In this document: in pieces, positions 455-62,858 of the stretch
How positions within the stretch are numbered: the first letter of the stretch is position 1
Layout: every line of letters starts with the position of its first letter
The notes under the pieces: model-generated
Seen by the model: the letters and a program-made list of their open reading frames with translations, nothing else
Told to the model about the DNA's origin: nothing
Databases searched by the model: none
Made by a program: the position numbers and the translations under genes
Origin: Saccharolobus islandicus REY15A
GTDB taxonomy: Archaea; Thermoproteota; Thermoprotei_A; Sulfolobales; Sulfolobaceae
NCBI RefSeq assembly: GCF_000189555.1
Contig: NC_017276.1
Direction: 5' to 3' (one strand)
DNA: 64,000 bases

Positions 455-640
455 AGAAAAAATAGACAAACCTAGTGAACAACCCCGCCCTTACGGACGT
501 GGCATCTCCACCTCACGATGGAGATTTCCTGCTTCTTCCAGGAAACCTACTATACACACCCTCAGAGAAGGGTATGTATAGCAGAGGTCCCCTGTCCACA
601 GGCTCTAAGGGCTGTCCCGACCCCGCATGAAGAATATTTA
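455..640 (-). ncRNA. Predicted TnpB omega-RNA (tnpB 3' end plus right end; guide from flank TAGGTTTGTCTATTTT...)
   Basis: Inferred from known IS200/IS605 omega-RNA architecture; boundaries approximate. Confidence 0.55.
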
Positions 641-1718
641 GAGAAGCATTATAGTCACGATCTACAGCCCAACCACACTTGGGACATACAAACACACGGT
701 CAGCCAAAGCCAAGTCCTTCTTAACGTACCCACATTTAGCACATGTCTTAGAAGTATTCCTCGGATCTACTTTCACTACCCTCCTACCAGCTCTTTCAGC
801 CTTGTAGGAGAGATAGCTCACAAACTTAGAAAAGTTGGAGTGAAGGATATGCTTTCTCAAAACTTTACTTTCACCATCCTCGACCATCTCCTTGACATCA
901 AGATCTTCCACATAGATCTCATCATACTCTTCTACTAACCACGAAGTTACTTTATGAATATAATCACTCATCAAGTTCTTCACATGCTCGTGAAGCTTAG
1001 CTAGTTTTTTCCTAACCTTCTCGTAGTTTCTAGATCCCTTCTTCTTTCTAGATAATGATTTTTGTAAGATCTTTATCCTCCTCTCGACCTTATCAAAAAC
1101 CTTGGGGTTCTCTATTACTACACCATCAGAGGTGGTTACGAGTTTCTCCACTCCTAAGTCTATCCCAACTACTTTCCCAGTTTTCTCAAGAGGCTTCTTT
1201 TCCACCTCAACTTGAAAGATAGCATACCAACCAGTTGAACTCTTCTTTATTATTACCCCTTTTACCTCGCCTTCTAACGGTCTGTGAAAAAGCACTTTAA
1301 TCTCCCCTATCTTTGAGAGGGTCAGCTTGTCTCCCTCAACCTTGAAACCAGATTGATTATAATTGATGATCTTCAAGATCTTCTTGTACCTCAGTTTCCC
1401 AACTTTCTTCCCTTTCTTCTTCTGTTCGTGAAGAGCATTGATGTTGTACCATAATTGGTTGTTAACCATTTGAAGGGCTTTAGAGTAAACTAGTTCCTTC
1501 CCTTCTATTTTCAGATCTTTCAACATGTTTTGAGTGTCTTTAGGTGTTATCTTTTTCCCTTCTTTCCTCGCGTTATTCACCACGTCTAGCAAGGCATTGT
1601 ATACTTTAGCCTCAATTTGCATCACTTTGATGAGTTTCTCCTCTACTTCTCTCGTTGGGTAAATCTTGTACTTGAATGAGAGTTGAATCTTATCACTCTT
1701 CTCCTTGGCTCTCCACAT
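513..1718 (-). CDS. tnpB: RNA-guided endonuclease TnpB
   Basis: RuvC motifs VGIDLG, VEDL and DRDYNASLN; zinc finger CAKC...CPKC; all intact. Confidence 0.95.
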   Translation of the reverse strand: MWRAKEKSDKIQLSFKYKIYPTREVEEKLIKVMQIEAKVYNALLDVVNNARKEGKKITPKDTQNMLKDLKIEGKELVYSKALQMVNNQLWYNINALHEQKKKGKKVGKLRYKKILKIINYNQSGFKVEGDKLTLSKIGEIKVLFHRPLEGEVKGVIIKKSSTGWYAIFQVEVEKKPLEKTGKVVGIDLGVEKLVTTSDGVVIENPKVFDKVERRIKILQKSLSRKKKGSRNYEKVRKKLAKLHEHVKNLMSDYIHKVTSWLVEEYDEIYVEDLDVKEMVEDGESKVLRKHILHSNFSKFVSYLSYKAERAGRRVVKVDPRNTSKTCAKCGYVKKDLALADRVFVCPKCGWAVDRDYNASLNILHAGSGQPLEPVDRGPLLYIPFSEGVYSRFPGRSRKSPS

Positions 1719-8573: not shown

Positions 8574-9620
8574 TTATTCACCTACCTTTATTCTAGGATC
8601 CAATAATCCGTAAACTAATTCCCCTAAAAACAATCCAAGTAACAACACAATTGTCAAAACGTAGGTTATCCCTAATATCACTGGTAAATCATTTAAGGTT
8701 ATGGCAACATAAGTTAACAAACCCACCCCAGGCCATTCGAAAACAACCTCTGTGGTTAAACTACCTCCTAATGATCCAGCTAGTGCTAAAATAGCTTGTG
8801 TGGCAATTGATGGGGAGGCAGAGCGTAAGACATGTCTATACAATATTCTGGAATCTGGTAATCCTCTAGCCTTCGCTGTAATCACAAAATCTTCCTTCAT
8901 AATTGATGTAACTAAACTTCTAACAATATATGCGAATCCTCCGACGTTTACAATAAATATAGTAATCAATGGTAATGACATATGATATAAAACACTTATT
9001 CCATAATCAAATGGATTCTTTGGCGGTGGAACTGAGGTCATTCCTCCAGGTGGGAAAACTTTAACTGCATATGCTAAAGCAGCAATTAGGACAAAACCTA
9101 ACCACCAAGTGGGAATACTAGAGTGTATTACAGCTATTATTGCAATTACCTTCTCCCAGAATTTAGATTTTGCAGAGAGTAAGCCAATTATAGTCCCAGC
9201 TACTATGAATACTATAGTAGCAGTAGTAAATAAGAGAATAGTATTGGGCAAATAATAAGCTATAATTGAACTAACCTCTCTAGAACCAGAAGGAGCTTGT
9301 AAAAAGTAAGCTGTACCGAAATCGAAACGCATCAAATTATACATTTGGATAAAATATTTATCGATAATTGGTTGGTTAAGCCCGTAAGCCGCAATTAAAG
9401 ATTCCCTATACTTCTCTACTGCAATCTGAATTTGAGTAGAGTTTAGATTATGGGCATTTTTAAACAAAGTTTGAGAGAACTGTGCAACTTGAAAATTGAT
9501 ACTCTTAGCTATAACCTCCTGCAATATGGGAAAAGTAAAAATATAAAGAATGGTTAAAGTGGCTAGAAGAACTGAAAAATAAATAAGTACCTTTTTTATC
9601 ATATATGTGGTAAAACCCAT
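8574..9620 (-). CDS. Peptide ABC transporter permease (DppB-like)
   Basis: FDFG; FVITAKARGL (EAA); EVVFEWPGVG. Confidence 0.93.
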   Translation of the reverse strand: MGFTTYMIKKVLIYFSVLLATLTILYIFTFPILQEVIAKSINFQVAQFSQTLFKNAHNLNSTQIQIAVEKYRESLIAAYGLNQPIIDKYFIQMYNLMRFDFGTAYFLQAPSGSREVSSIIAYYLPNTILLFTTATIVFIVAGTIIGLLSAKSKFWEKVIAIIAVIHSSIPTWWLGFVLIAALAYAVKVFPPGGMTSVPPPKNPFDYGISVLYHMSLPLITIFIVNVGGFAYIVRSLVTSIMKEDFVITAKARGLPDSRILYRHVLRSASPSIATQAILALAGSLGGSLTTEVVFEWPGVGLLTYVAITLNDLPVILGITYVLTIVLLLGLFLGELVYGLLDPRIKVGE

Positions 9621-9637
9621 TATTACTCACTCTTTTA

Positions 9638-12358
9638 TTATCTCCTTCTGAATAATAATACCGCTAAAGCTATTATTATAATTATTAGGACTACTATTAC
9701 AGCAATATAGCCAATATTCGAGGCACTAGATACTACAGTACTGACTATAGTACTCGCTACAGTGCTGATTACAGTACTAACTGAAGTAATCGTAGTTGTG
9801 GATAAAGACGTACTGACTGATGTAGTCGTAGTAGTACTTGTTGTAGTTGTTGTACTTGTTGTAGTGCTCGTAGTAGTTGTTATGGATGGTAATACTACAA
9901 GAGTATATGTTACTGGATTTATTAATATTGAAGTATTACTGTACGCTGATACCGATAGTAGGTATGATCCAGGAGATAACGAAGATGGAACGGTGAAGGT
10001 AAATTGTCCACTAGAATTGGTCATTAATTGATATCCTGATATTATAGAGCCATTTGGATACAATAATTCTATATTAACTATGGCATTTGGAGTAGGTATT
10101 GCTGTGGTACTTCCAGCAGGAGTTCCCATTAAAGTACCAGTTAAGGTTTGACCAGGTGAAACTGTTGATGGGATGCTTAGTGAAACTGAATACATAGTCG
10201 GTAAGGCTAACGCATTAGATGGAGGAACCAAATGGAAGTAGGGATTCCTTATCAGTTTTGCGTAGGGTGGAGACGCACTCGGATTCCACGCTACCAAGAT
10301 ATATGGACCATCACCTATTAATCCATTTCCATAGGTCTTCATGAAGTTAATTGCCGCTTCATATCCAGCTTTTGCTTCTTGTGGAGTTACTAGAGTTATA
10401 CCGCTTAAGTTCTCTACTATCTGTAAACTCTTAGGTATATACCCAGTAGCTGAGGCATTCTGTAACGCTGAAGTTATATATCCAATATCAGTTGGACTAA
10501 CTAGATTCAGCCAATCAATTCCTTTGGACTGGGCTGCTCCCTCAGACCACGCAGCTTTACCTTGTGCAACAACATCTTTCATACCAACATACATTTGCCA
10601 TGGGAAATAACCTCCGCCAGCTAACGCGTAACCTAATGGATTGAATGATCCAAATAAGCTAACTACAGCCTCAGTAGGATCGAAGAACCAATCATTGCCC
10701 CATATTTCTATAGCAGTGGAGTTAATTATCTTAAATCCTTTAATAGTCTGTAGTGCTGGAGCATATACTGATGATGCAGTTGAGTCATAAATTGGATTAC
10801 TAGAGTTTAAGGACATCTCGGATGCAACAATATATTCATATATTATGTCAGCAAGAGTTATATTTTGACCATCAGCCCATTTATCGTTATTGAACAGTGG
10901 GGCTAAGTTATATATTACAGCCATTTGCGCAGTAGTATTAGGAGATACCTTAGTTATTTGCTGCGTAGTTGGATTCCACCACAATGCATTTGAAGGTACT
11001 GATACTACAGCATGTGGAGTTATATTAACTATCTTGTAAGTATAAATGAAAGGTACTGGGTATCCCGAACCTGGTACTGTTAAAGAGGACGGAGTGAATA
11101 AAGCGTTTCCTATTTCATCTGTATAGGCATCAGTGAAACCAGCACCGGGATTAGCCGAACCTTGACTTAAGTATCTAACACCTATTGTAACATTAGGATA
11201 GCTTCCATTCGTTATAGAATAATATGTCTGGAAGCTTAGTAGTGTACTTTGGGCAAAACTTGGATACACACCATTAATGTTAGATAGTGCGTATATTGGG
11301 GTTAGACTCATTCCTAGTCCTATTCTTACTGACATGTTAATACCTAACTCTACAATCTTATTATATATTTGGTAATATTCTTGGGCGCTAGTGAACTGAC
11401 TTTGGGCTATTATCAATGATAGATTGTCAAGCTCATTAGCCTCTTTAAGTAATAATGAGGATTCATACCTGGTATCGTTATACGTACCCATACTTAAGCC
11501 GTAATATGAAGAAAATGGATCAGCAGCTCCTAAAGTACTGTAAAGTCCTACTGCTAAACTAGAATCATAATACCCATAAGTCCCACCCCAAGCTTCAATT
11601 AATATATTCCACGTAGTATTTGCAGGATCGCTACCGTATACTACAGAAATTTCCTTTTGTAAATTCCCTTGAATTTGCTGGACAGTAAAACCTAACTTCT
11701 GTAGTTGAGTTATAAAATATTGGGCATATTCTCTCCTTACAGTGGCATCAGTTCTGACAAATACGTAAACTGTTATGGGTTTCCCATTATAATACCATTG
11801 TCCATTAATATATTTAGCACCATGAGCAGTTAGAACTTTATAAATGGTTTCATTTGCATAAGTGAAATTATAGTGAACATTAGCGTACTTAGATAGTGTT
11901 TGTTGGAGATGAATCACATCAGGTTCTCCAGCATATAGAGATATAGCTGGTATACCATAACCGTGTAGTATACTATCTACAAAATAGGTTCTATTTACTA
12001 TATAGTTCAGTGCGAATCTAACTTCTTGGAACTGGAATGGGTTAAAACCAAAAGTAGTATTTAATGGATTTACCAGAATGTCATAATAAGTACTCGGTAG
12101 TAAGTAAGCTTTAGCCCCTGGAGGCAAACTTGTATATTCTGATGGAGGTACAGCGTAAGCATAAAAGGCTATTTGCCCATGCTCAAAAGCCAATATACCG
12201 TTTGCGTCATTACCGTTATATGAAATTATTGTTATTGCTGTAGAAGCAGGCGAAGAACTGGCAGATTGTACTATGGTAAAAATAGGGCTCATAGCAGTTG
12301 CAACTAGTATTAAGAGCGAAATTATTTTTTTGTCTTTTATACTTAACATACTATACAC
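9638..12358 (-). CDS. Peptide-family ABC substrate-binding protein with Ser/Thr linker and C-terminal membrane anchor
   Basis: Signal peptide; EVRFALNY family-5 motif; poly-Thr tract; terminal TM followed by RRR. Confidence 0.9.
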   Translation of the reverse strand: MYSMLSIKDKKIISLLILVATAMSPIFTIVQSASSSPASTAITIISYNGNDANGILAFEHGQIAFYAYAVPPSEYTSLPPGAKAYLLPSTYYDILVNPLNTTFGFNPFQFQEVRFALNYIVNRTYFVDSILHGYGIPAISLYAGEPDVIHLQQTLSKYANVHYNFTYANETIYKVLTAHGAKYINGQWYYNGKPITVYVFVRTDATVRREYAQYFITQLQKLGFTVQQIQGNLQKEISVVYGSDPANTTWNILIEAWGGTYGYYDSSLAVGLYSTLGAADPFSSYYGLSMGTYNDTRYESSLLLKEANELDNLSLIIAQSQFTSAQEYYQIYNKIVELGINMSVRIGLGMSLTPIYALSNINGVYPSFAQSTLLSFQTYYSITNGSYPNVTIGVRYLSQGSANPGAGFTDAYTDEIGNALFTPSSLTVPGSGYPVPFIYTYKIVNITPHAVVSVPSNALWWNPTTQQITKVSPNTTAQMAVIYNLAPLFNNDKWADGQNITLADIIYEYIVASEMSLNSSNPIYDSTASSVYAPALQTIKGFKIINSTAIEIWGNDWFFDPTEAVVSLFGSFNPLGYALAGGGYFPWQMYVGMKDVVAQGKAAWSEGAAQSKGIDWLNLVSPTDIGYITSALQNASATGYIPKSLQIVENLSGITLVTPQEAKAGYEAAINFMKTYGNGLIGDGPYILVAWNPSASPPYAKLIRNPYFHLVPPSNALALPTMYSVSLSIPSTVSPGQTLTGTLMGTPAGSTTAIPTPNAIVNIELLYPNGSIISGYQLMTNSSGQFTFTVPSSLSPGSYLLSVSAYSNTSILINPVTYTLVVLPSITTTTSTTTSTTTTTSTTTTTSVSTSLSTTTITSVSTVISTVASTIVSTVVSSASNIGYIAVIVVLIIIIIALAVLLFRRR

Positions 12359-13461: not shown

Positions 13462-13914
13462 ATGGATCAAGTTGAGATTCGCACTCACACCGCCTTACAT
13501 GTGGTCAAAGGAGCTGTGAGGAAAGTTTTGGGTGCCAAATGGACTGCAAGCACTTACGTTAATAGCAATCATGAGAGATTAACGGTAAAGTTTGAGAGGA
13601 AACCTAGCGATGAGGAAATGGATAAGGTCTTTGAATTGGCTAACGAGAAGGTTAGAAAAAACCTTCCAATAATAATTGAGGTTTTACCTAGGGAAGAAGC
13701 TGAAAGGAAATATGGAGATGAGATCTACGATCTCTTTCTTATTTCAGCTGAGGTTAGGGAGTTAAGCATTGTGGTAATACCAGATTGGAATATTAACGCT
13801 TGCAATAAGCAACATACTAAGACTACCTCTGAGATTGGAGAGATCATCAAGGACTATTGGAGATATAGGAATAGTAAACAGTTACTCGAGATTTCATTTG
13901 ACATAAAGTGTTAA
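13462..13914 (+). CDS. alaX: Stand-alone alanyl-tRNA editing protein (AlaX-S type)
   Basis: Zinc-binding motifs HTALH and CNKQH. Confidence 0.9.
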
Positions 13915-15302
13915 GAATGATAGGAAAAGTCCTTGAGCTTTTAAACTGTAAGGAGACTGAGAGGGAAATTAACAGAAGAAAATTTTCAATATGCGATGAT
14001 GTTAACTTCATCTTGAATTTACCAATCGGTTATTTAAAAGATGTAATTTCACCACTTGAAAACTATTTATCAAAACATATGACTAATAACTTTTCAAGAT
14101 TAACTCGCGTAGTTCCTAACGATTATGAGGATACACAACTACATTTCAGTAAATTCTTTTTAAACCTTTACAGTAGCGCAATTTCTGAAATCCCAAGATT
14201 TAACATCCTTACCTCACTAGTCATCTTAGATGAGTATCGAATGATGCCAGATAAGGCTTTAATTGCTGCAGCTGACGAATTGGCGAGGAATGGCATCAAC
14301 GCAATTTTCTCTACTTCAACACCTTCGGTATTCTTTGAGGAGGAGATAGTAAGTAGATTTAGAAATAGAAGAGTGGTATCTATTTCAATAGTTAATGAAT
14401 ATGGGCAAGCGGTTGAGGGTAGGGATTGCGTGAAGAAAGGTGAGGGATATTATCAGTGTAGGGGTAGCTACGAAGTGATTGAATTAATTGACGATTTTAA
14501 CATTAGGGATTTAGATTATGAGATCATTAAAGGTGAAGAGGTATTTAAGGTAAAGGAACCATTTACGCTTTTCGTAAATTCTTGGGAAAAGGCGTTGAGA
14601 TTATACAGAAAGTTAAGGGAGGAAAGAAATACTGAGGTATGTTTACTTAATAGTAGTGATGAATGCAAAGTGACTATTACACCTAAAATTATGCCTACTA
14701 GGTTTAACGTGGTGAGCGAAATTTCGTCATTACCAACTATTGTAGCTAGAAGTGGAATTATTAATGATAGGGATAAGATCTACGTCTGGGTTGATAGGGA
14801 TAATTACGATACAGTAACTGAAAGTACTCTTAATCTACTTTCAAATATCAAAGTATGCTTAAAACATCCCTTTGGCTGTAATGGAAAGATGGGATATGCT
14901 AACAAGACGGTCTTAAAGCCTAACATTGATGAAAGGCTTATAAAAAGGCTAAGTGAAATAAGCCACTTAATGGATAGAAGGGAGTTCGAGAAGGTGACAG
15001 AACTCTTCAGTGATTTCGTAACAGTCGATCTATTTACTGATAAAGAGAAAATAACTACAGTACCTCCCGAGTTTGTATACGAGAACAAAAAGAAGATATT
15101 ATACTACGGAAATAGCTGCGTTTACACGTACTTTACTGATGGAGAAAAATGCTCTAAGATAGTTTATAATTGGTTAGAAGGCGGAGGTGTTTCATGGCTT
15201 AAGAGGAATTTAGCAAGGGCTTATAAGAATTACGTTGAGGAAGAAGGAAAAAAGGAGGTATTTTTGGGATTAAAGGCTAAAGACGTGGGAGAATGGATTT
15301 AG
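13908..15302 (+). CDS. Cas3'-like SF2 helicase homologue with degenerate catalytic motifs
   Basis: Ordered motifs LPIGYLKD (I), RLTRVVP (Ia), [18 protein letters not shown] (II), STSTP (III), [13 protein letters not shown] (IV), VARSGII (VI) follow type I-A Cas3' as recalled. Confidence 0.75.
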
Positions 15303-15784
15303 AGAAGTTTAGGAGAGAGTATTATTACGTTGTCCCCATAATCGCCAATAGGATTAAGAGAGATGAGGAGAAAGTTAAAAAGTACATTGAGCTTGCTATA
15401 ATCTTACAGAGCGCAATAGGAAATGAAGTATATACTGCATATTATCTTTACTACATATACGAGGAACTGGGTGATATTGATCTAGGAATTCCGATCGTTT
15501 TGGCAATTGTTAACCATAGAGATGTATGGAAGGCTAGAGCTCTCAGAAGTGTTACAGCGTATAATACGTTAAAGGTATTTGAGGTTAAAGATGATGTAAA
15601 GAGAATAATTGAAAATAAGTTAAGGGAAATTAACATTCCAATAAAAATTGTTATGAAAATATTAAATAATATTGAACCAATACAGATTAGAAAACTATTC
15701 AGCAATTTGTCTATAGTTCACCCAGAAGTGTATAGTCTGATTTTAGGTGTATTTACCTCGATTGAGCAGGGAAATGAGGGTTAG
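15293..15784 (+). CDS. Cas3''-like HD-domain homologue lacking the HD metal ligands
   Basis: AIILQSAIG at the LHDxGK position, NEVYTA at HE, AIVNHR at NH/HH, SLILGVFTSIE at the terminal D motif; overlaps the upstream gene. Confidence 0.6.
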   Translation: MDLEKFRREYYYVVPIIANRIKRDEEKVKKYIELAIILQSAIGNEVYTAYYLYYIYEELGDIDLGIPIVLAIVNHRDVWKARALRSVTAYNTLKVFEVKDDVKRIIENKLREINIPIKIVMKILNNIEPIQIRKLFSNLSIVHPEVYSLILGVFTSIEQGNEG

Positions 15785-15818: not shown

Positions 15819-17573
15819 ATGGGAGGGATTTTCGCTTTCGTATGCAAGGATTCCATTGATGTTTCAATTATTAACAAGGGTTTAAAGAAGTTGATTTATA
15901 GGGGATATGATAGCGCTGGTATTGCTTACCTTGAAGACGATAGCTTAGTAATAAAGAAAATTTTAGGTAATATCTCAAAGAATGAGATAAGCGTTAGTGA
16001 CAAGGCAAGAGTTGCAATAGGTCACACTAGATATGCTAGTAGGGGTTGGCCAACTTTGGAAAACGCTCACCCACTGACTGATTGTAATGGGAAGATAGCA
16101 GTTGTAATGGACGGTATTCTTGACGATTACGAAAAAATTAGGGAAGATCTGATTGCGAAGGGACATAAATTCGTCTCTACAACTGACGCTGAGGTGATTC
16201 CCCACTTACTTGAGAATTCAACAAACTATCTAAACTCATCATTAAACGTTATGAAAAGGGTAAAGGGTATTTACTCTCTGGTTTTTGTAACCATAGACAT
16301 TGATAAAATATTCGCAATTAACTCTGGCCAACCCTTGATGATAGGTATCACACAAGAGTGTAAATACGTTTCTAGCGATTTACCCTCTTTGAGCGGTTTT
16401 GCTGAGAATGCGATAATAATGCCAGAAAATACTGTGGCAGTAATCTCTTGGAATGATGTGCAAGTGTATAATATTGAAGGTAATGAGGTAAAACCGGAAA
16501 TTAAGAGAGTTAAATACAAGGAGGAGATAGCTGAAAAGGGTGGATTTCCACACTTCATGTTAAAGGAGATATACGATATTCCACAGGCCTTGATAAACTC
16601 ATTTAACTCTTTAATGGAGAAGTACCTTTCCTTAGCCTCGATGATACTATATGGTGCTAAAAACGTTTATGTGATAGGTAATGGAACCAGTCTTCATGCT
16701 GGATTAATCTCCACTTACTATTTCTCAGAAATCGGTCTAAATGTTAACGTTGTAAGTGCAGCGGAATTTCCATATTATGCCTTGGAAAACGTAACTACTG
16801 GTTCAGTAATTATTGCCATAAGTCAAAGTGGAGAGACCAGTGATGTTATAAGGAGTGTTAAAATGGCCAAGCAGAGAGGAGCTGTGATATTAGGCATAAC
16901 CAACTCCGTAGGTTCAAGATTGGCATTGGAGTCTAACGTATACCTACCAATAACCGCTGGACCAGAAATGGCTGTGCCTGCAACCAAAACTTTTACCTCG
17001 ACTATTGTGGTACTTAAGGTACTTTCACTATATACTGGACTTCACTCCGGGAAAAATAGTAGGAGTGACATTAATTCATTAAAAACCGAGATCGAGGAAT
17101 TGGCTAAACAGCTTGTTATGAGTTTACCGGAAATGGAGAAAGAGGCAGAGAAATTGTCTATTAAACTGGATAAGGAAAGCTTATACGTTTCAAGTAGTGG
17201 GATAAATTATCCCGTAGCATTGGAAGGAGCTTTGAAATTTAAGGAAGCTTCAATGACTCACGCAGAGGGTATGCAGTTGGGAGAGCTCTTGCATGGTCCA
17301 ATCGTTCTCACAAATAAAGGTTATCCCGTGATTTTAATAAAACCTGCTGAGGCTGAGGATTTGTACAATAAGGTTGTTAAGTCAATAAGGGAAAGGGGGG
17401 ATGTGATTATAACCATTTCTGAAGATGGTGATATGAAGAGTGTAAAGACAATTAGGGATTTGACTCCTATAAGCAATGTAATACCGTTACAGTTATTAGC
17501 TTATAAGCTGGGAGTTAAGAGGGGTTTCCCAATAGACACTCCTCCGGGACTAGTAAAGGCTGTCATAGTTTAA
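15819..17573 (+). CDS. glmS: GlmS-like protein with inactive glutaminase domain
   Basis: Ntn domain (RGYDSAG, GHTRYA) but N-terminus is MGGI, not MCGI; two SIS domains with [17 protein letters not shown]. Confidence 0.9.
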
Positions 17574-20272: not shown

Positions 20273-21214
20273 GCTTTCGCAACTGATTCCATAACTCTTC
20301 ATCGATAGGTATTCCATCAACGAACCTTTTCGCTCTTACATTTAAACCCGTGTTCACCAGGGAATTCAATTCCTAAAGTTTCCCTCAATTTCTCTATTTC
20401 CTCTCTATACCCTGCAAAGAACGAAGGATTAATACCTATTAATACTTCTCCCTTATTTGGAGGACTTTCAGTATTTAGCACACCTTTGACGTCAGATCCT
20501 AGGGCTGAGCCAGTCAGGAAACTCACTAGACTTTCTAAAACTAACATTAAGAAGAATCCTTTCATTCCACCAATTGGTGATAACCCTCCTCTTAACGCTC
20601 TTTCTGGATCTTCTGTAGGGTTACCATTCTCGTCAACTGCTAAACCCAAAGGGATTTTCTCCTTTCTTCTAAGGGCTTGTATTATTTTACCTCTTGAAGT
20701 TGCTGACAGTGCCATGTCTAGGACTATTGATGGTGGGATACTTATTGAAATTGGAGTAGTTGATAGCATTTTCCTTGAACTTCCTGGCATAACTACTGCA
20801 GGCTCTGCATTGCCAAACATTATTCCAACTAGTCCCCTCTTGCCTAATTTCTCAGTGTAGTAACCTAAGAACCCAATGTGAGACGAATTCTTAACTGCTA
20901 TTATCGAGATGGGATCACTCGTAAATTCCCTTTCAACTAACTTAGTCCACAACACAATACCTATACTTGCTTTAGCGTCTATCCACATACTATTTCCGCT
21001 TTGCCTTATGATTTCATATCTTAACCTTTTACTAATTGTTCCAAGTTCTATACCCTTAACTAGGGGAACTAATCTTTGAATACCGTGAGAAGAGTGGCCT
21101 CTAAGTTCTGCCTCAACGAAGTGGTCAGCTATTACGTCACTATCCTCTACCTCTCTTTCCTTAAGTATTTCAATAATTAACCCTTTTAACTCATCGACTC
21201 TTACCTTATTTCAT
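20259..21214 (-). pseudogene. Ldh2/ComC/AllD-family NAD(P) oxidoreductase with two +1 frameshifts
   Basis: ELRGHSSHG, GGMKG and FPGE motifs; extra A after the ATG at 21214 and extra T near 20345. Confidence 0.8.
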
Positions 21215-21312
21215 AAGCGAGATATTTTATGATAAGTCAAATTTAAGAGTAGTTGAGAAAGATTGTTCTGTATACGGTTAAGTATATATGCTTTCTTACA
21301 AAATATTAAGAC

Positions 21313-44240: not shown

Positions 44241-44852
44241 TTATCGGAAACTGTTATCAACGGCTTTTATTTCTGGTTCTTTAGCTATAAGGTCGGTTTC
44301 ATTACGTAAACTTAAACCCTTAAAATCCAAGAATTCCTTAAAGGATAAAGGATAGACGTTTATTATTACATGCCTACCGGCAAGTTTCTTTCTAACATTT
44401 TCGTTTATTAGGTCTGAAGTGGAGCCAGAAACTATTATGAAAGCCTCCTTTCTGTCTATAAGAGATCTGACGAATCCTTCCCATCCATTAACCCTTTGTA
44501 TTTCATCTAAAAATACGTAAGGTTTAGTATCTTTTCTCCTTCTAATCTCCAAGTATATTTCGTATAACTTAAATAGGTCTTCTACGTTTTGAACGCTAGT
44601 TAATCTTCCGTCTTCGAAGTTTATTATGAAGATGTCAAAAGGATCTATACCACTTTCGATTAATTTCTTAGCCACTTGATTTAATATTGTTGACTTCCCA
44701 GCCCTTTTAACTCCCAATATGCTTGCAACATACCAACTATTTATTACACTTAACACTTTCTTCACGTAATCATCTCTAGGATAACCAGTAAACTGAGTCT
44801 TGTACCAGAAATTCCAGTCAATTAATGCCTTTAAAATAAGTTCTCTGTTCAT
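44241..44852 (-). pseudogene. N-terminal half of an AAA_14/DUF4143 ATPase
   Basis: GVKRAGKST; FLDEIQ; VSGST; truncated at about 200 aa. Confidence 0.85.
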
Positions 44853-47941: not shown

Positions 47942-48478
47942 CTAAATATCGAATAGAATTGTATTAGCTTTATCTGAAATTAAGTTGCAGTAGGTGTTCT
48001 TTATCTCTTCAACGCATTGCACTCTATCCTGAAGCTCTGGGATGTTCTTTAGTTCTCTAATTCTATTATTTATTTCTCTATAAGAATCTTGAGGAATTAT
48101 CGAAGTTATTATTTTAGCTCCCTTCTTTTTAGCAGCTAAGGCTGCTGCAACACTCATACCTTTTCTTCCTCCAGTTATATCTACATAATCTCCTTCTCCT
48201 ATCTGTTTTTCTATAAAATTCTTGAATTTTATTAAATCCTCTTCATTATTTATATCATCCATTTCAACTGGGTGTTTACTAATTATTACGTTAGGATACT
48301 TCTCCTTTACGCAACAAATGAACATTATTTTCACTATTTTCCAAGCTTTCTCTACCTCAGGATTCGTAGTAGTTATGACTCTGATCTCGTCAATTTCTAC
48401 TCCTTGTCTTATGAGATACAAAAAGGTTTCTAGGACACCACCTGGCGATGTGCCTAAAGTGGCTACTAACTTAGCCAT
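47942..48478 (-). CDS. crn1: CARF ring nuclease, Crn1 (Sso2081-like)
   Basis: ATLGTSPGG; DITGGRKGMS; stand-alone CARF beside the DPSL cluster. Confidence 0.88.
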   Translation of the reverse strand: MAKLVATLGTSPGGVLETFLYLIRQGVEIDEIRVITTTNPEVEKAWKIVKIMFICCVKEKYPNVIISKHPVEMDDINNEEDLIKFKNFIEKQIGEGDYVDITGGRKGMSVAAALAAKKKGAKIITSIIPQDSYREINNRIRELKNIPELQDRVQCVEEIKNTYCNLISDKANTILFDI

Positions 48479-50930: not shown

Positions 50931-51365
50931 TCATGTTTTATTAACTTTTTTCTCTTCAAACAATTTCTTTGCATATTCTAATACTTCCTCGGCCATTTTA
51001 ATTGATTGTTGTGCATCATACTCTGAGTAGAGTAATTCTGGTGGGGAATTTGTCTCTTCATCACCGTACATTGACAATTCCCTTTCTTTTCTTAGAGATC
51101 TTGAGTACGACGCAAAAATGTCTATTTTTTCCTTAAACCATTGTGGAAATTTATCGGCGTTATTTTTTAATATAGGGCCTACATCATGAAATTTTGGTGG
51201 TTCTATATTAACAAGTCTAAGGCATGCTTTAAGGGAAAGTTCTACAGATTCTTGACAAAGTCTAACTACAATATTATATTTCTTTCTTTCATATTCTATT
51301 TTAGCTAAGCTTAGCCTCTCTTCAGATTGTGAGATATATGAAGAGGCTAAGGAGTTAAAGTTCAA
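50931..51365 (-). CDS. HEPN-domain protein (toxin of MNT-HEPN pair)
   Basis: CQESVELSLKA; HDV; RELSMY. Confidence 0.9.
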   Translation of the reverse strand: MNFNSLASSYISQSEERLSLAKIEYERKKYNIVVRLCQESVELSLKACLRLVNIEPPKFHDVGPILKNNADKFPQWFKEKIDIFASYSRSLRKERELSMYGDEETNSPPELLYSEYDAQQSIKMAEEVLEYAKKLFEEKKVNKT

Positions 51366-51846
51366 CTGTATCGCCGAATTTCGAATCTTTTTTAAGTACC
51401 CAGTACCATTTCTTACCTATTCTTACCCTTTCAGCTCCTAATTCCTTAAGTCTCTCCTTTAGTTTTTGTAGTATTTTAGTGAAGAATTGATTCTTGTCAT
51501 AAAGTATTATCGCATCGTATACCATGTCTAAATAGAGAGGAGAAATTTTCTCTGCCTCTTCTGGCGTTTTAAGAATTGGTGAAAGTGATATGTAATAACC
51601 ATTTTTCCAGAATTCGTCTAAGTTTAGCTTATCCTCAACCTTAGTCTCAAATAATCTAATTCTCTTAAGCATACTATCCTTAGGCAGGTTCTTTATAATT
51701 ATTAATAAATCTACATCACTGTCATTTCTATTATCTCCCCTAGCAACACTTCCGTAAAGTACAACTGAGATGAGATCATCTTTAAATTCCTCTTTCATTA
51801 TTTTAACCATGTTATTAAGCAATGTAATGTAAGGCTCTTTTATCAC
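51355..51846 (-). CDS. Minimal nucleotidyltransferase (MNT antitoxin)
   Basis: LYGSVARGD...SDVDLL; overlaps the HEPN gene. Confidence 0.92.
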   Translation of the reverse strand: MIKEPYITLLNNMVKIMKEEFKDDLISVVLYGSVARGDNRNDSDVDLLIIIKNLPKDSMLKRIRLFETKVEDKLNLDEFWKNGYYISLSPILKTPEEAEKISPLYLDMVYDAIILYDKNQFFTKILQKLKERLKELGAERVRIGKKWYWVLKKDSKFGDTVEL

Positions 51847-57266: not shown

Positions 57267-58004
57267 ATGAAGATTAGGATTGGTATTATAAGTTTAAAAG
57301 GAGGTGTAGGGAAGACAACAATAGCATTGAATACTGCATTATATCTTTCCAAGAGATATAAGGTGTTATATATTGATAAGGATCTACTTTCCATGGGGTC
57401 TTTAATTTTAGGATTTAATGGTCTTGGTTTCCATAAAGCAATAGTAGAAGGTTTAGGCAACGAGCAATATGAGTATAAGGTTAATAACAACTTAACGTTA
57501 TTTAAGTTATATAGTGAACCTGTAAATGAGAAAGAGTTACATGATAAGATGAAAGACATTGGTGAAAAAGCTAAAAAAGCTTACGTTGATGTTATATCGA
57601 AGGGCTATGATGTAATCATAGTAGATTACGGTAGAATTTTCAGAATTAATGATCCATTAGTGTATGACGAATACGAAATGTTTAAGAAAAATTTCCCTGA
57701 CTATCTCATAGCTACAGTAGGAATTACTGACGCTATTAGGAATGATATTACAAATGTCGTAAAATATTTTTTAGATACAATAAATGGGACTAAAGCAAAA
57801 CCCCTCGCTTTCGTAATTAACATGGTACCTCCGATAAGTGATATTCAGAAAGAAATTGGCCAAATGGCTAGAGAAATTAGTGAGGTTGTAAAATGTGATA
57901 CACTTATCATTCCCTTTAACGAGAAGTTGGTACAATATAGCAATATAGGAGAAGTGGAAGAAATGCAGAAGTTGGGAAAATTAATAGAGAGAATTTTATC
58001 TTAA
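57267..58004 (+). CDS. ParA/MinD-family ATPase
   Basis: Deviant Walker A SLKGGVGKTT; IDKD; IIVD; INMV. Confidence 0.88.
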   Translation: MKIRIGIISLKGGVGKTTIALNTALYLSKRYKVLYIDKDLLSMGSLILGFNGLGFHKAIVEGLGNEQYEYKVNNNLTLFKLYSEPVNEKELHDKMKDIGEKAKKAYVDVISKGYDVIIVDYGRIFRINDPLVYDEYEMFKKNFPDYLIATVGITDAIRNDITNVVKYFLDTINGTKAKPLAFVINMVPPISDIQKEIGQMAREISEVVKCDTLIIPFNEKLVQYSNIGEVEEMQKLGKLIERILS

Positions 58005-59310
58005 CAAGGGGTTCAAAGGGGGCGAAAGACCCCTTCCGTGAGGGAGGGGATGGATAGCCCCCTTATATTTAAATAATTCTTTTTCAAATATTCTATTAAT
58101 GTCTGACGTAGGGTTACGCTTTAGAGCTTACGCTGACGAACAAACATTGAGGGCGTTAAAAGCCCAATTGAGGTTAGCGTGTGAAGTGTACAACACCCTA
58201 CGTTGGGCAGACATCTATTTTCATGAGAGAGACGGAAAAGGACTCACTAAGACGGAGTTGAGACAACTAGCTCTCGATCTAAGAAAACAGGATAAACAAT
58301 ATCGACATCTATATTCCCAAACACTACAACAGATCGCAGACAGATTCTACGACGCTAGACAGAGGTTCTTCGAAGGGTTAGCACACTTCCCCAAGGAAAA
58401 GAAAGCACACAAGTGGTACTCACTAGTCTACCCTCAGTCAGGTTGGAAAGTCATGAAGGTGAGAGAAATAAGGACGAAAAGCAAGAAGAAGGTAATGACG
58501 CTTCAGCTTTCAAACCTAGGTATCTTCAACGTCGTTGTTCATAGGGATTTCCAACTGGAAAAAGTGGAGAGGGTAGTAGTCAAGCTGGCACCTTCAGGCA
58601 GATTGTACATCACTTTCGTTGTGGATCAAGAGTATCCTCAACTCCCCAAGACAAACAAAGTTGTTGCTGTGGACGTTGGTGTAGAGAAACTTCTCACTAC
58701 CTCTGATGGGGAATACGTGCCAAACATGAGGCCTTACGAGAAGGCACTCAACAAGATGAAGAGGCTTCATAAAGCTCTTTCAAGGAAGAAGTTCTTGTCA
58801 CACAACTGGTTTAAGGCGAAGATTAAGCTTGCAAGGGCTTATGAGCACTTGAAGAACTTGAGGATGGATATGTACATGAAACTGGGGAAGTATTTTGCTG
58901 AGCATTATGATGTTCTCGTAATGGAGGATATTCATGTTAAGCAAATTGTTGGTAAGTCTCTCAGAAGGCTGAGGATGAGGTTGCACGATGTTGCTTTTCA
59001 TGAGTTTAGGAGTATTATGGAGTATCAAGTTGGGAAGTATGGTAAGGAGATTCGTTTTGTTAATCCTGCTTTTACTTCAATGATTTGTGCTAGGTGCGGT
59101 TACGTTAAGAAGGACTTGGCTTTGGCTGATCGTGTGTTTGTCTGTCCTTCCTGCGGTTGGACTGTAGATCGTGATTATAATGCTTCTCTTAATATTCTGA
59201 GTAGATCGGGGTCGGAACGACCCTTAGTGCCTGTGGAGCTGAGACCTCTACCTTTGGCAAGCCTCGGCTGTGAAGCAGGAAGCTACGTCCGTTAGGGCGT
59301 GGTAGTTCAC
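58005..59310 (+). mobile_element. tnpB-only IS200/IS605 element, about 1306 bp (ISC1316-like)
   Basis: Left-end hairpins after CTTAA; right end ...GTTAGGGCGTGGTAGTTCAC; no tnpA. Confidence 0.9.
58099..59295 (+). CDS. tnpB: RNA-guided endonuclease TnpB
   Basis: AVDVG; MEDI; CARC...CPSC; DRDYNASLN; all intact. Confidence 0.95.
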
Positions 59311-62210: not shown

Positions 62211-62858
62211 TTATATAAATGTCAAAGCAATCCTACCCAAAATAGTTTTTCTACACGTTTTAGGCCTAGTCTTTGTACACTCCAAAAATCCCTCCTCTTC
62301 CATTTCACTAACTTGTTTTGAAATAGTTGATAAAGTTTTTTGAAGCCTATCAGCCATTATGCTAATCTCAATGGAGTTCTCGAACTTAAACAGTTTCAAG
62401 ATCTCAGCCTCACTATCAGTTAGCCTTCTAGGAATTTCCACTGGCAATTCGTACTTTTTGGACATATCCTCTGTATAATTGAAAACCCTAACGTTTAGCC
62501 CAAACCTTTTAGCTAGCATTGCGTAATAGTACAAGACGAAGTTAATTATCCTCATCCCACCAATCAAGTAAAACTCCAAGTTATTTTTACCAGATAATTC
62601 ATTGGCAACTTCATGGAGGACTTCTGCGAAGTCCTTGTTAACGTCAACGTACTTCCACTTATACTTCACGTTTATAATATCTAAAAACTTCTTCACGTCA
62701 TTTAATGCATTATCTGCTTGCTTCCTCCTAAAATCGTCAATGTTAAACACTCCAATGAGAACTACCTCATCAATGTTATCCCTTCCCCTTTCCGTTATAC
62801 TTCTAACTATGTACTCTGAGGTAAAGCCTAATCCAAATACTAGTGTATTCCCTTCCAC
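62211..62858 (-). CDS. csa3: Csa3-family CARF-HTH transcriptional regulator
   Basis: LGFTSEYIVR; LIGGMRI; C-terminal wHTH KTLSTISKQV. Confidence 0.88.
   Translation of the reverse strand: MEGNTLVFGLGFTSEYIVRSITERGRDNIDEVVLIGVFNIDDFRRKQADNALNDVKKFLDIINVKYKWKYVDVNKDFAEVLHEVANELSGKNNLEFYLIGGMRIINFVLYYYAMLAKRFGLNVRVFNYTEDMSKKYELPVEIPRRLTDSEAEILKLFKFENSIEISIMADRLQKTLSTISKQVSEMEEEGFLECTKTRPKTCRKTILGRIALTFI

Follow-up and report, generated by a model that had tools for sequence, protein, structure and literature searches.

A cas3'-like and cas3''-like gene pair outside CRISPR loci

The window, which is the whole 64-kb stretch of DNA analysed here, belongs to the chromosome of Saccharolobus (formerly Sulfolobus) islandicus and carries two adjacent genes, ORF1 and ORF2 (open reading frames 1 and 2), related to the split helicase (Cas3') and HD nuclease (Cas3'') of type I-A CRISPR systems. 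Proteins of S. islandicus match ORF1 at 99% identity. An earlier reading of the sequence (the original prediction) had described two intact, overlapping frames, which is what is found: ORF1 and ORF2 are open from end to end and overlap by 10 nt (Table 1), and ORF2 stands immediately downstream of ORF1, as cas3'' does of cas3'. In the light of the data presented below, we regard it as very probable that these genes encode an exapted, catalytically dead Cas3'/Cas3'' pair that is kept by selection.

The homology of the pair is exposed only by the cas profiles of PADLOC and by structure comparison. ORF1 matches the PADLOC model Cas3a1 (E=1.8e-64, 216 bits), and ORF2 matches the model Cas3a2 (E=3.6e-27) together with a second Cas3 HD model (E=2.5e-23). 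Searches of other collections were uninformative: Pfam returned no DEAD, Helicase_C or Cas3-like_C match for ORF1, neither Pfam nor NCBIfam returned a match for ORF2, and PDB sequence searches with both proteins gave nothing usable. The homology of ORF1 to Cas3' is certain, although the protein does not reach the threshold for curated NCBIfam membership (18.4 bits with cas3_core, TIGR01587, at a cut-off of 102.45).

The AlphaFold 2 model of ORF1 has a mean predicted local distance difference test (pLDDT) score of 77.8. Its best match in Foldseek is the crystal structure of a Cas3 DExD helicase (8wtk; E=1.7e-11, template modelling (TM) score 0.55), followed by the Cas3 structures 4q2d, 6c66_G and 4qqw. 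The model of ORF2 (pLDDT 83.6) is all-helical, and its sole meaningful match is 7tra_Q, a chain of the type I-A Cascade of Pyrococcus furiosus (probability 0.99, E=0.03, TM score 0.45), the remaining matches being ferritin-like noise. A shallow profile-profile comparison (hhalign) relates the dead HD proteins to two live Cas3'' proteins at 93% probability. Judging from these models, ORF1 is predicted to keep the RecA1-RecA2-C-terminal domain (CTD) fold of Cas3', and ORF2 the helical HD fold of Cas3''.

A profile search for relatives of ORF1 among 1.84 billion representative proteins yielded 15 clusters only. The family of ORF1 itself is a single cluster at 50% identity, and the next-best clusters are bona fide Cas3' proteins scoring above the NCBIfam cut-off. 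Three of these are encoded in canonical csa5-cas7-cas5-cas8a-cas3'(-cas3'') loci, namely those of Sulfurisphaera tokodaii, S. acidocaldarius SUSAZ and Acidianus manzaensis, the last adjoining an array of at least 67 repeats. Both proteins are true homologues of type I-A Cas3' and Cas3'', with a resemblance far beyond chance. The derivation from a split type I-A Cas3 that had been proposed at the outset is borne out by the profile matches, by the Foldseek matches to Cas3 and by the position of ORF1 in the phylogenetic tree (see below).

State of the catalytic motifs

The motifs of ORF1 were assigned by alignment with eight live Cas3' proteins. An intact set of superfamily 2 (SF2) helicase motifs (I, Ia, Ib, II-VI) is absent from ORF1 (Table 1). 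Motif III, SAT in the live proteins, has become TST (S/T-A-T to T-S-T), and the arginine finger of motif VI is gone. The remnant of motifs Ia and Ib is where the model has low confidence, with pLDDT below 50 for residues 68-95. A few positions are retained and are invariant across dead and live proteins, i.e. K41 of Walker A, D105 and E106 of Walker B, the first arginine of motif VI (R278), and G280.

Conservation of at least 90% in 11 live Cas3' proteins from Sulfolobales is seen in 196 alignment columns, and the three dead copies from Saccharolobus keep 71 of these. The losses in ORF1 are concentrated on the catalytic and DNA-track motifs; the parts kept comprise the N-terminal 60 residues, the CTD block and eight cysteines that align with cysteines of the live proteins (C11, C26, C171, C181, C242, C250, C314 and C321). 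The degenerate motifs are themselves conserved among the Saccharolobus copies of ORF1. In SF2 helicases, motifs Ia, Ib, IV and V contact single-stranded DNA. Because these are the segments that are deleted or replaced in ORF1, a canonical DNA-tracking role is argued against, and the suggestion that the pair acts as a nucleic-acid-binding protein of the canonical kind is weakened in the same way. Judged by its sequence, ORF1 appears to have lost the residues and segments that ATP-driven movement along single-stranded DNA requires, and looks catalytically dead.

ORF2 was aligned with two live Cas3'' proteins. It is devoid of the N-terminal segment that bears the histidine of motif I, and of the aspartate of motif V; the histidine of motif III is replaced by asparagine, and the HH of motif IV by HR. 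One of about seven metal-ligand positions is left. ORF2 seems to be without the residues for metal-dependent DNA cleavage and thus also looks catalytically dead. Every motif substitution listed in the original prediction is seen in the alignments with Sulfolobales Cas3' and Cas3'', and the damage to both halves is wider than had been noted.

Table 1. Features of the gene pair and its immediate surroundings, in coordinates of the window.
Feature	Position	Strand	Remarks
TATA-like box TATATAAAA	13429..13437	+	About 29 nt 5' of the alaX2 ATG; read from the sequence
alaX2, free-standing alanyl-tRNA synthetase (AlaRS) editing-domain protein (AlaX-S type), 150 aa	13462..13914	+	Orthologue M164_0462; first gene of the putative operon
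ORF1, alternative GTG start	13908	+	464 aa; overlaps the alaX2 stop
ORF1, degenerate Cas3' helicase homologue, 461 aa	13917..15302	+	ATG start as in most records; orthologues SSO1270, SiRe_0421, M164_0463
ORF1 motif I (Walker A)	14022..14042	+	PIGYLKD vs live PTGYGK[TS]; Lys kept; preceding Gly to Leu, following Thr/Ser (Mg-binding) to Asp
ORF1 motif Ia-Ib remnant	14109..14171	+	About 30 residues of live Cas3' (including ITTYDSF) deleted
ORF1 motif II	14229..14240	+	DEYR vs live DE[YF]H; DEYQ in the other three lineages
ORF1 RecA2 region	14640..14762	+	Motif IV HSRF deleted; V TQVIEVGVN to PKIMPTRFN; VI QRxGRxxR to ARSGII plus deletion
ORF1 C-terminal-domain block	14856..14906	+	Common to dead and live proteins; CLKHPxGC..K.GYA
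ORF2, degenerate Cas3'' (HD nuclease) homologue, 163 aa	15293..15784	+	Orthologues SSO1269, SiRe_0422, M164_0464
ORF2 degenerate HD motifs	15401..15523	+	HD to QS, then 14-residue deletion; GHE to GNE; SHH to NHR
T5 tract and TATA-like box TTTTTATAA	15791..15799	+	Between the ORF2 stop and the glmS ATG
GlmS gene	15819..17573	+	Directly 3' of the pair; orthologue M164_0465

Selection, conservation and synteny

The ratio of non-synonymous to synonymous substitution rates (dN/dS) was calculated within Saccharolobus, dS being saturated in comparisons with 'Sulfolobus' tengchongensis. Across three Saccharolobus lineages, pairwise dN/dS is 0.125-0.155 for ORF1 (bootstrap upper bound at most 0.21) and 0.10-0.19 for ORF2 (bootstrap upper bound at most 0.33); four neighbouring genes display values of 0.06-0.12. 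The pair is under purifying selection that is somewhat relaxed compared to housekeeping genes. Among the 15 members listed for each cluster, those of the ORF1 family measure 461-464 amino acids with one exception and those of the ORF2 family 163 with two exceptions, and the shorter ones are all taken from assemblies of metagenomes or of short reads. Up to about 150 contigs carry any one of the common sequence variants, full-length copies are found in dozens of strains, and the frames are open across lineages that have diverged to 51-57% protein identity.

Four lineages, represented by S. islandicus, two genomes of the S. solfataricus type, Sulfolobus sp. E5-1-F and S. tengchongensis, have the identical gene order mupG-like / alaX / cas3'-like / cas3''-like / glmS. 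The two frames have stayed open, adjacent, overlapping and in synteny, as had been claimed, and the orthologues are neither mostly broken nor evolving neutrally. The low dN/dS and the nearly uniform full length of the listed family members support exaptation rather than decay.

Origin and stepwise loss of motifs

In a maximum-likelihood tree, four dead sequences of the ORF1 type form one clade (support 100/100) that is nested inside the type I-A Cas3' proteins of Sulfolobales as sister to the array-linked Cas3' of A. manzaensis (97/97). The stem of the dead clade is long (0.58 substitutions per site). The live Cas3' proteins resident in Saccharolobus (P0078, P0079) belong to another sub-clade and carry canonical motifs I, II, III, V and VI. 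ORF1 is 26-30% identical to live Cas3' of this resident type and 37% identical to Acidianus Cas3'.

The copies of S. tengchongensis share the Ia-Ib deletion, the loss of motif V, DEYQ in motif II and most of the losses in the HD domain, and still carry PTVYGKT, ERAGRALR and LHD. Given these intermediates, the pair was probably already enzymatically non-functional in the common ancestor, with further motif loss in Saccharolobus. As far as can be read from the aligned sequences, motif loss was stepwise. The pair arose once and has been inherited vertically within a narrow clade. It would be a lineage-specific paralogue of a type I-A cas3'-cas3'' cassette, and would have become separated from its Cascade genes and array in the common ancestor of Saccharolobus and S. 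tengchongensis.

Some features of the A. manzaensis locus (L008) may be mentioned here. In the region 9439-12200 of this locus, no cas3'' ORF follows the gene for the live Cas3' to which the dead clade is sister. A gene-free gap of 560 bp precedes the gene, short degenerate repeats extend from its stop (11846-12126), and the CRISPR array (at least 67 copies) begins at about 13.6 kb.

Putative operon structure and CRISPR content of the window

AlaX2, encoded by the gene directly 5' of ORF1, is a free-standing editing protein with intact HxxxH and CxxxH zinc motifs and partial matches to the NCBIfam AlaRS/AlaXM models (E=9e-24 to 5e-18). Its stop codon lies 2 nt before the ATG of ORF1, or overlaps with the alternative GTG start. 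In all four lineages, alaX2 directly precedes the pair with a gap of at most 22 nt or an overlap. The TATA-like box upstream of alaX2 is likely the promoter of an alaX2/cas3'-like/cas3''-like operon, the mRNA of which would be leaderless or near-leaderless. The T5 tract and second TATA-like box behind ORF2 likely mark the operon end and a separate promoter of glmS; a bacterial promoter/terminator scan is uninformative for an archaeon. In published RNA sequencing (RNA-seq) data, glmS responds differently from the S. islandicus REY15A copies of the pair, SiRe_0421 and SiRe_0422. We infer that alaX2, ORF1 and ORF2 are co-transcribed and that glmS is transcribed separately.

The original prediction had reported no array and no Cascade genes near the pair, and this holds for the whole 64 kb: repeat searches, one of which recovered the A. 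manzaensis array as a positive control, found no CRISPR array in the window, and screening it with tblastn and PADLOC turned up neither Cascade genes nor cas6 nor adaptation genes. Rfam searches gave no match in the window. In S. islandicus M.16.4, the type I-A locus is about 450 genes away from the pair. Two orphan genes of the CARF family are present in the window. The first (47942-48478, minus strand), 32 kb from the pair and with no other cas gene around, encodes a stand-alone CARF-domain protein of 177 amino acids (Pfam Cas_NE0113, E=3.9e-12; PADLOC Csx1 'Type I associated', E=4.6e-82, and CARF_m13, E=8.5e-78), which may be an orphan cyclic-oligoadenylate sensor or a ring-nuclease-like protein. 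The second (62211-62858, minus strand), 46 kb from the pair and far from CRISPR-cas loci, encodes an orphan regulator of 214 amino acids that resembles Csa3/CasR and combines a CARF domain with a winged helix (PADLOC CARF3, E=2.7e-105; Csa3 'Type I-A associated', E=2.9e-30).

A weak Cas8a-like tblastn match at 58.3 kb was rejected, as it falls on a TnpB gene. Two genes of the TnpB/IS200-605 OrfB type with strong matches to Cas12f models are located at 513-1718 (minus strand) and 58099-59295 (plus strand), the latter following a gene for a ParA-like ATPase (57267-58004).

The neighbours of the pair are housekeeping genes, no integrase or transposase is found within about 12 kb, and GC content is uniform around the locus. 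No relatives of the pair were found in IMG/VR viral contigs, phage and virus records, plasmid records or the viral structure models of BFVD. The lack of viral and plasmid relatives and the even GC content make an origin from a mobile element unlikely.

Published genetics, expression and annotation

The essential-genome supplement for S. islandicus M.16.4 lists M164_0463 as Cas3 (arCOG01444) and M164_0464 as Cas3'' (arCOG01443, 'HD superfamily nuclease') (PMC6249222). Neither gene is essential (14 and 17 transposon insertions were recorded, respectively), and the same applies to alaX2 (M164_0462) and the adjoining glmS paralogue M164_0465; a second, essential glmS is located elsewhere in the genome (M164_1770) (PMC6249222). 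The genuine I-A pair of this strain is M164_0912/0913, so that live and dead copies coexist in one genome (PMC6249222). The pair is dispensable in culture.

REY15A carries SiRe_0421/0422, and deleting the resident cas3' or cas3'' of this strain abolishes PAM-dependent DNA interference (PMC3737332). The orphan pair therefore cannot stand in for the live genes, and the two pairs are not redundant. Wild-type strains carrying the pair interfere normally (PMC3737332), which argues that the pair exerts no strong constitutive inhibition. Given this result and the 26-30% identity of ORF1 to live Cas3' of the resident type, the data speak neither for nor against the dominant-negative regulator of type I-A interference named in the original prediction. 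With regard to expression, the entries for SiRe_0421/0422 in an RNA-seq supplement have large standard errors, and their adjusted p values are given as NA (PMC10465181); we read these statistics as low counts, so that expression seems low. An apparent induction of SiRe_0422 in cold stationary phase (log2 fold change -4.7) is not relied on here, one replicate having poor strandedness and mapping (PMC10465181).

The names Cas3 and Cas3'' are already attached to the pair in arCOG and IMG, and 'RNA helicase' is used by NCBI; type I-A Cas3'' nucleases belong to arCOG01442/01443. A search of the searchable literature by locus tag and keyword found no paper on the pair or its inactivation. Hence, the homology to Cas3 is already recorded in databases, and the inactivation is apparently undescribed in the literature searched.

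A proposed binding-only heterodimer and its alternatives

Taken as a whole, the observations are best explained, in our view and with moderate confidence, by a type I-A-derived paralogue that lost catalysis and was kept as a binding-only heterodimer, perhaps one that docks to Cascade. The products of ORF1 and ORF2 would form a non-catalytic heterodimer that acts by binding instead of catalysis. Its most likely partners would be the ancestral ones, i.e. each other and the Cas8a/Cas5/Cas7-crRNA (CRISPR RNA) body of type I-A Cascade; Cascade is named here because Cas3' and Cas3'' are integral subunits of it (PMC4390879). A binding-only descendant is plausible since the ancestral proteins work as bound Cascade subunits. 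Docking would result in a Cascade that binds without cutting. In these organisms, Cascade together with Csa3b represses the cas promoter (PMC5389559), and a binding-only Cascade could tune interference, promoter repression by Cascade/Csa3b, or tolerance of self-targets.

The docking mechanism itself is put forward tentatively, as a possibility that we consider less likely to be right than wrong, in view of how little ORF1 resembles the resident Cas3' and of the operon link with alaX2. A narrower version is rather unlikely, namely that the docking site of Cas3 is taken by a dead heterodimer which the host encodes and inherits vertically, and which constitutes the missing component of the Csa3b/Cascade repression circuit or a safeguard against self-targeting.

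Several points weigh against a binding-only heterodimer acting on Cascade. ORF1 and the resident live Cas3' belong to different sub-clades, and at the identity given above the docking surfaces of ORF1 may fail to match the resident Cascade. In RNA-seq of laboratory cultures, the pair seems to be expressed at a low level. Efficient interference in the wild type implies that any inhibitory effect is weak or conditional. The conserved operon partner of the pair is a tRNA-editing gene and not a cas gene. Finally, retention of K41, D105/E106 and R278 leaves room for residual nucleotide binding.

The operon partner suggests an alternative that we consider unlikely, if worth keeping in mind, in which the pair was recruited to a role outside CRISPR together with AlaX2, for example as a non-catalytic RNA/tRNA-binding or scaffold accessory for the trans-editing of mischarged tRNA(Ala), or for some other task in RNA metabolism. 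The arrangement described above, with alaX2 immediately 5' of the pair in four lineages, leaves no space behind the alaX2 stop in which ORF1 could have a promoter of its own, and the TATA-like box is found only before alaX2. AlaX-S proteins are without the extra tRNA-binding domain found in longer AlaX forms. However, the four lineages are close relatives, and their shared gene order may only reflect ancestry. In S. tokodaii, the orthologues of alaX2, glmS and the mupG-like gene are dispersed (ST1364, ST2545 and ST0866, respectively) and Cas3'/Cas3'' reside in the I-A locus. Furthermore, a position behind a weak promoter can result from neutral capture of that promoter, and the helicase motifs that contact nucleic acid are deleted in ORF1.

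The residues retained in ORF1 bear on a second alternative, which appears somewhat less likely still, according to which the pair is not fully dead: ORF1 would bind or slowly hydrolyse nucleotide as a switch or clamp, with ORF2 as regulatory partner. Invariance of K41, D105, E106, R278 and G280 among dead and live proteins would fit, as would the conservation of the degenerate motifs among Saccharolobus copies and the GKT and RAGR kept in S. tengchongensis. On the other hand, the glycine before the Walker lysine has become leucine, the Mg-binding threonine or serine has become aspartate, the arginine finger of motif VI and motifs V and IV are gone, and ORF2 keeps but a single metal-ligand position.

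It is improbable that the pair represents a functionless relic of a lost I-A module, either one that has not yet acquired disabling mutations or one kept only since its disruption perturbs the expression of neighbours. Such a relic would be expected to be non-essential in culture, seemingly low in expression and without known phenotype, all of which is the case, and the family is confined to one narrow clade and a single cluster at 50% identity. This reading is contradicted by dN/dS, which is far from 1 on the low side (bootstrap upper bounds, 0.21 and 0.33), by frames that are open across lineages at 51-57% protein identity and by full-length copies in dozens of strains. Moreover, glmS seems to be transcribed from a promoter of its own, so that the pair has no dependent gene behind it in the operon.

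An anti-CRISPR decoy derived from a mobile element and fixed in the chromosome, as the original prediction had also considered, has precedents in AcrIB3, AcrIB4 and AcrVIA2 (Cas5-, Cas8b- and Cas3-like, respectively), which inhibit CRISPR immunity (bioRxiv 10.1101/2023.06.24.545427), but is largely refuted and highly improbable in view of the syntenic position in the chromosomal core, the same in all lineages, among housekeeping neighbours with even GC content, no integrase or transposase nearby, and no viral or plasmid relatives.

Other features of the window

A low-GC stretch at 44-52 kb (GC about 0.30) contains overlapping genes for a HEPN protein and a minimal nucleotidyltransferase (MNT) at 50931-51365 and 51355-51846 (both minus strand), a typical HEPN-MNT toxin-antitoxin-like pair. 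At 44241-44852 (minus strand), an ORF for an AAA_14 ATPase of 203 amino acids matches PDC-S01, a candidate-defence family of PADLOC, over only its first ~40% (E=1.3e-47), an indication that the gene is truncated. A gene of the Ldh_2 family at 20317-21216 (minus strand) has a disrupted 5' end: its frame is 81% identical to residues 3-312 of the orthologue of Sulfolobus sp. E5-1-F, which has 317 residues, a stop stands at the position of the second codon of the orthologue, and the next usable start leaves 223 amino acids. It is likely a pseudogene, or encodes an N-terminally truncated product in this strain. The gene at 9638-12358 (minus strand) encodes a peptide ABC transporter substrate-binding protein of 906 amino acids with a long C-terminal linker rich in threonine and serine and a hydrophobic anchor, which is the usual means of surface tethering of Sulfolobales binding proteins.

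Relation to known systems

The pair shares homology, gene order and probably folds with type I-A Cas3'/Cas3'' as represented by S. tokodaii ST0032/ST0033, A. manzaensis Cas3' and M164_0912/0913. In contrast to these, it has no nearby Cascade, cas6 or adaptation genes and no array, its catalytic motifs are all degenerate or deleted, and ORF1 and ORF2 are shorter by about 90-130 and 50-60 amino acids, respectively. The start/stop junction overlaps by 10 nt, as compared to 4 nt in live I-A loci (L005, L007). Unlike the live genes, the pair is unable to replace the resident ones, and is presumably co-transcribed with alaX2. Concerning subunits of I-A Cascade (P. furiosus 7TRA; Thermoproteus tenax complex), the only meaningful structural match of ORF2 falls among these, at a TM score of no more than 0.45.

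Mobile elements of Listeria are known to encode cas-derived decoys that become part of defective complexes (bioRxiv 10.1101/2023.06.24.545427). The cas-derived anti-CRISPR proteins (Acrs) AcrIB3, AcrIB4 and AcrVIA2 are likewise orphan cas homologues without catalytic parts, and assemble into CRISPR complexes or sequester components of them. These Acrs are bacterial and reside on phages, prophages or plasmids, whereas the pair is archaeal, chromosomal and vertically inherited, and consists of two co-evolving subunits. Loss of catalysis with selection retained is also displayed by inactivated Cas effectors, such as III-G/III-H Cas10 with a dead cyclase domain, nuclease-dead Cas12 variants and the effectors of CRISPR-associated transposons (PMC12669027). 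These remain in CRISPR-cas or transposon loci with guide-RNA machinery, while the pair is detached from such loci. As in other pseudoenzymes, an enzyme homologue has lost catalytic residues and is under purifying selection.

Significance

A chromosomal, two-subunit dead Cas3 kept by selection outside CRISPR loci is not described in the searchable literature. For annotation, the finding implies that labels such as 'Cas3' (arCOG, IMG) or 'RNA helicase' (NCBI) credit these genes with too much activity and can lead to type I systems being overcounted. S. islandicus and S. solfataricus are the best genetic models for archaeal CRISPR biology, and the role of the pair is directly testable in them. 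If partnership with AlaX2 were true, defence proteins would have been exapted into translation quality control. If the pair docks to Cascade, type I-A interference would be subject to a layer of control on the host side; and if a dead pair occupies the Cas3 docking site, cas-derived anti-CRISPRs would have a cellular counterpart in it, and it would be the first pseudoenzyme known to regulate a class 1 effector.

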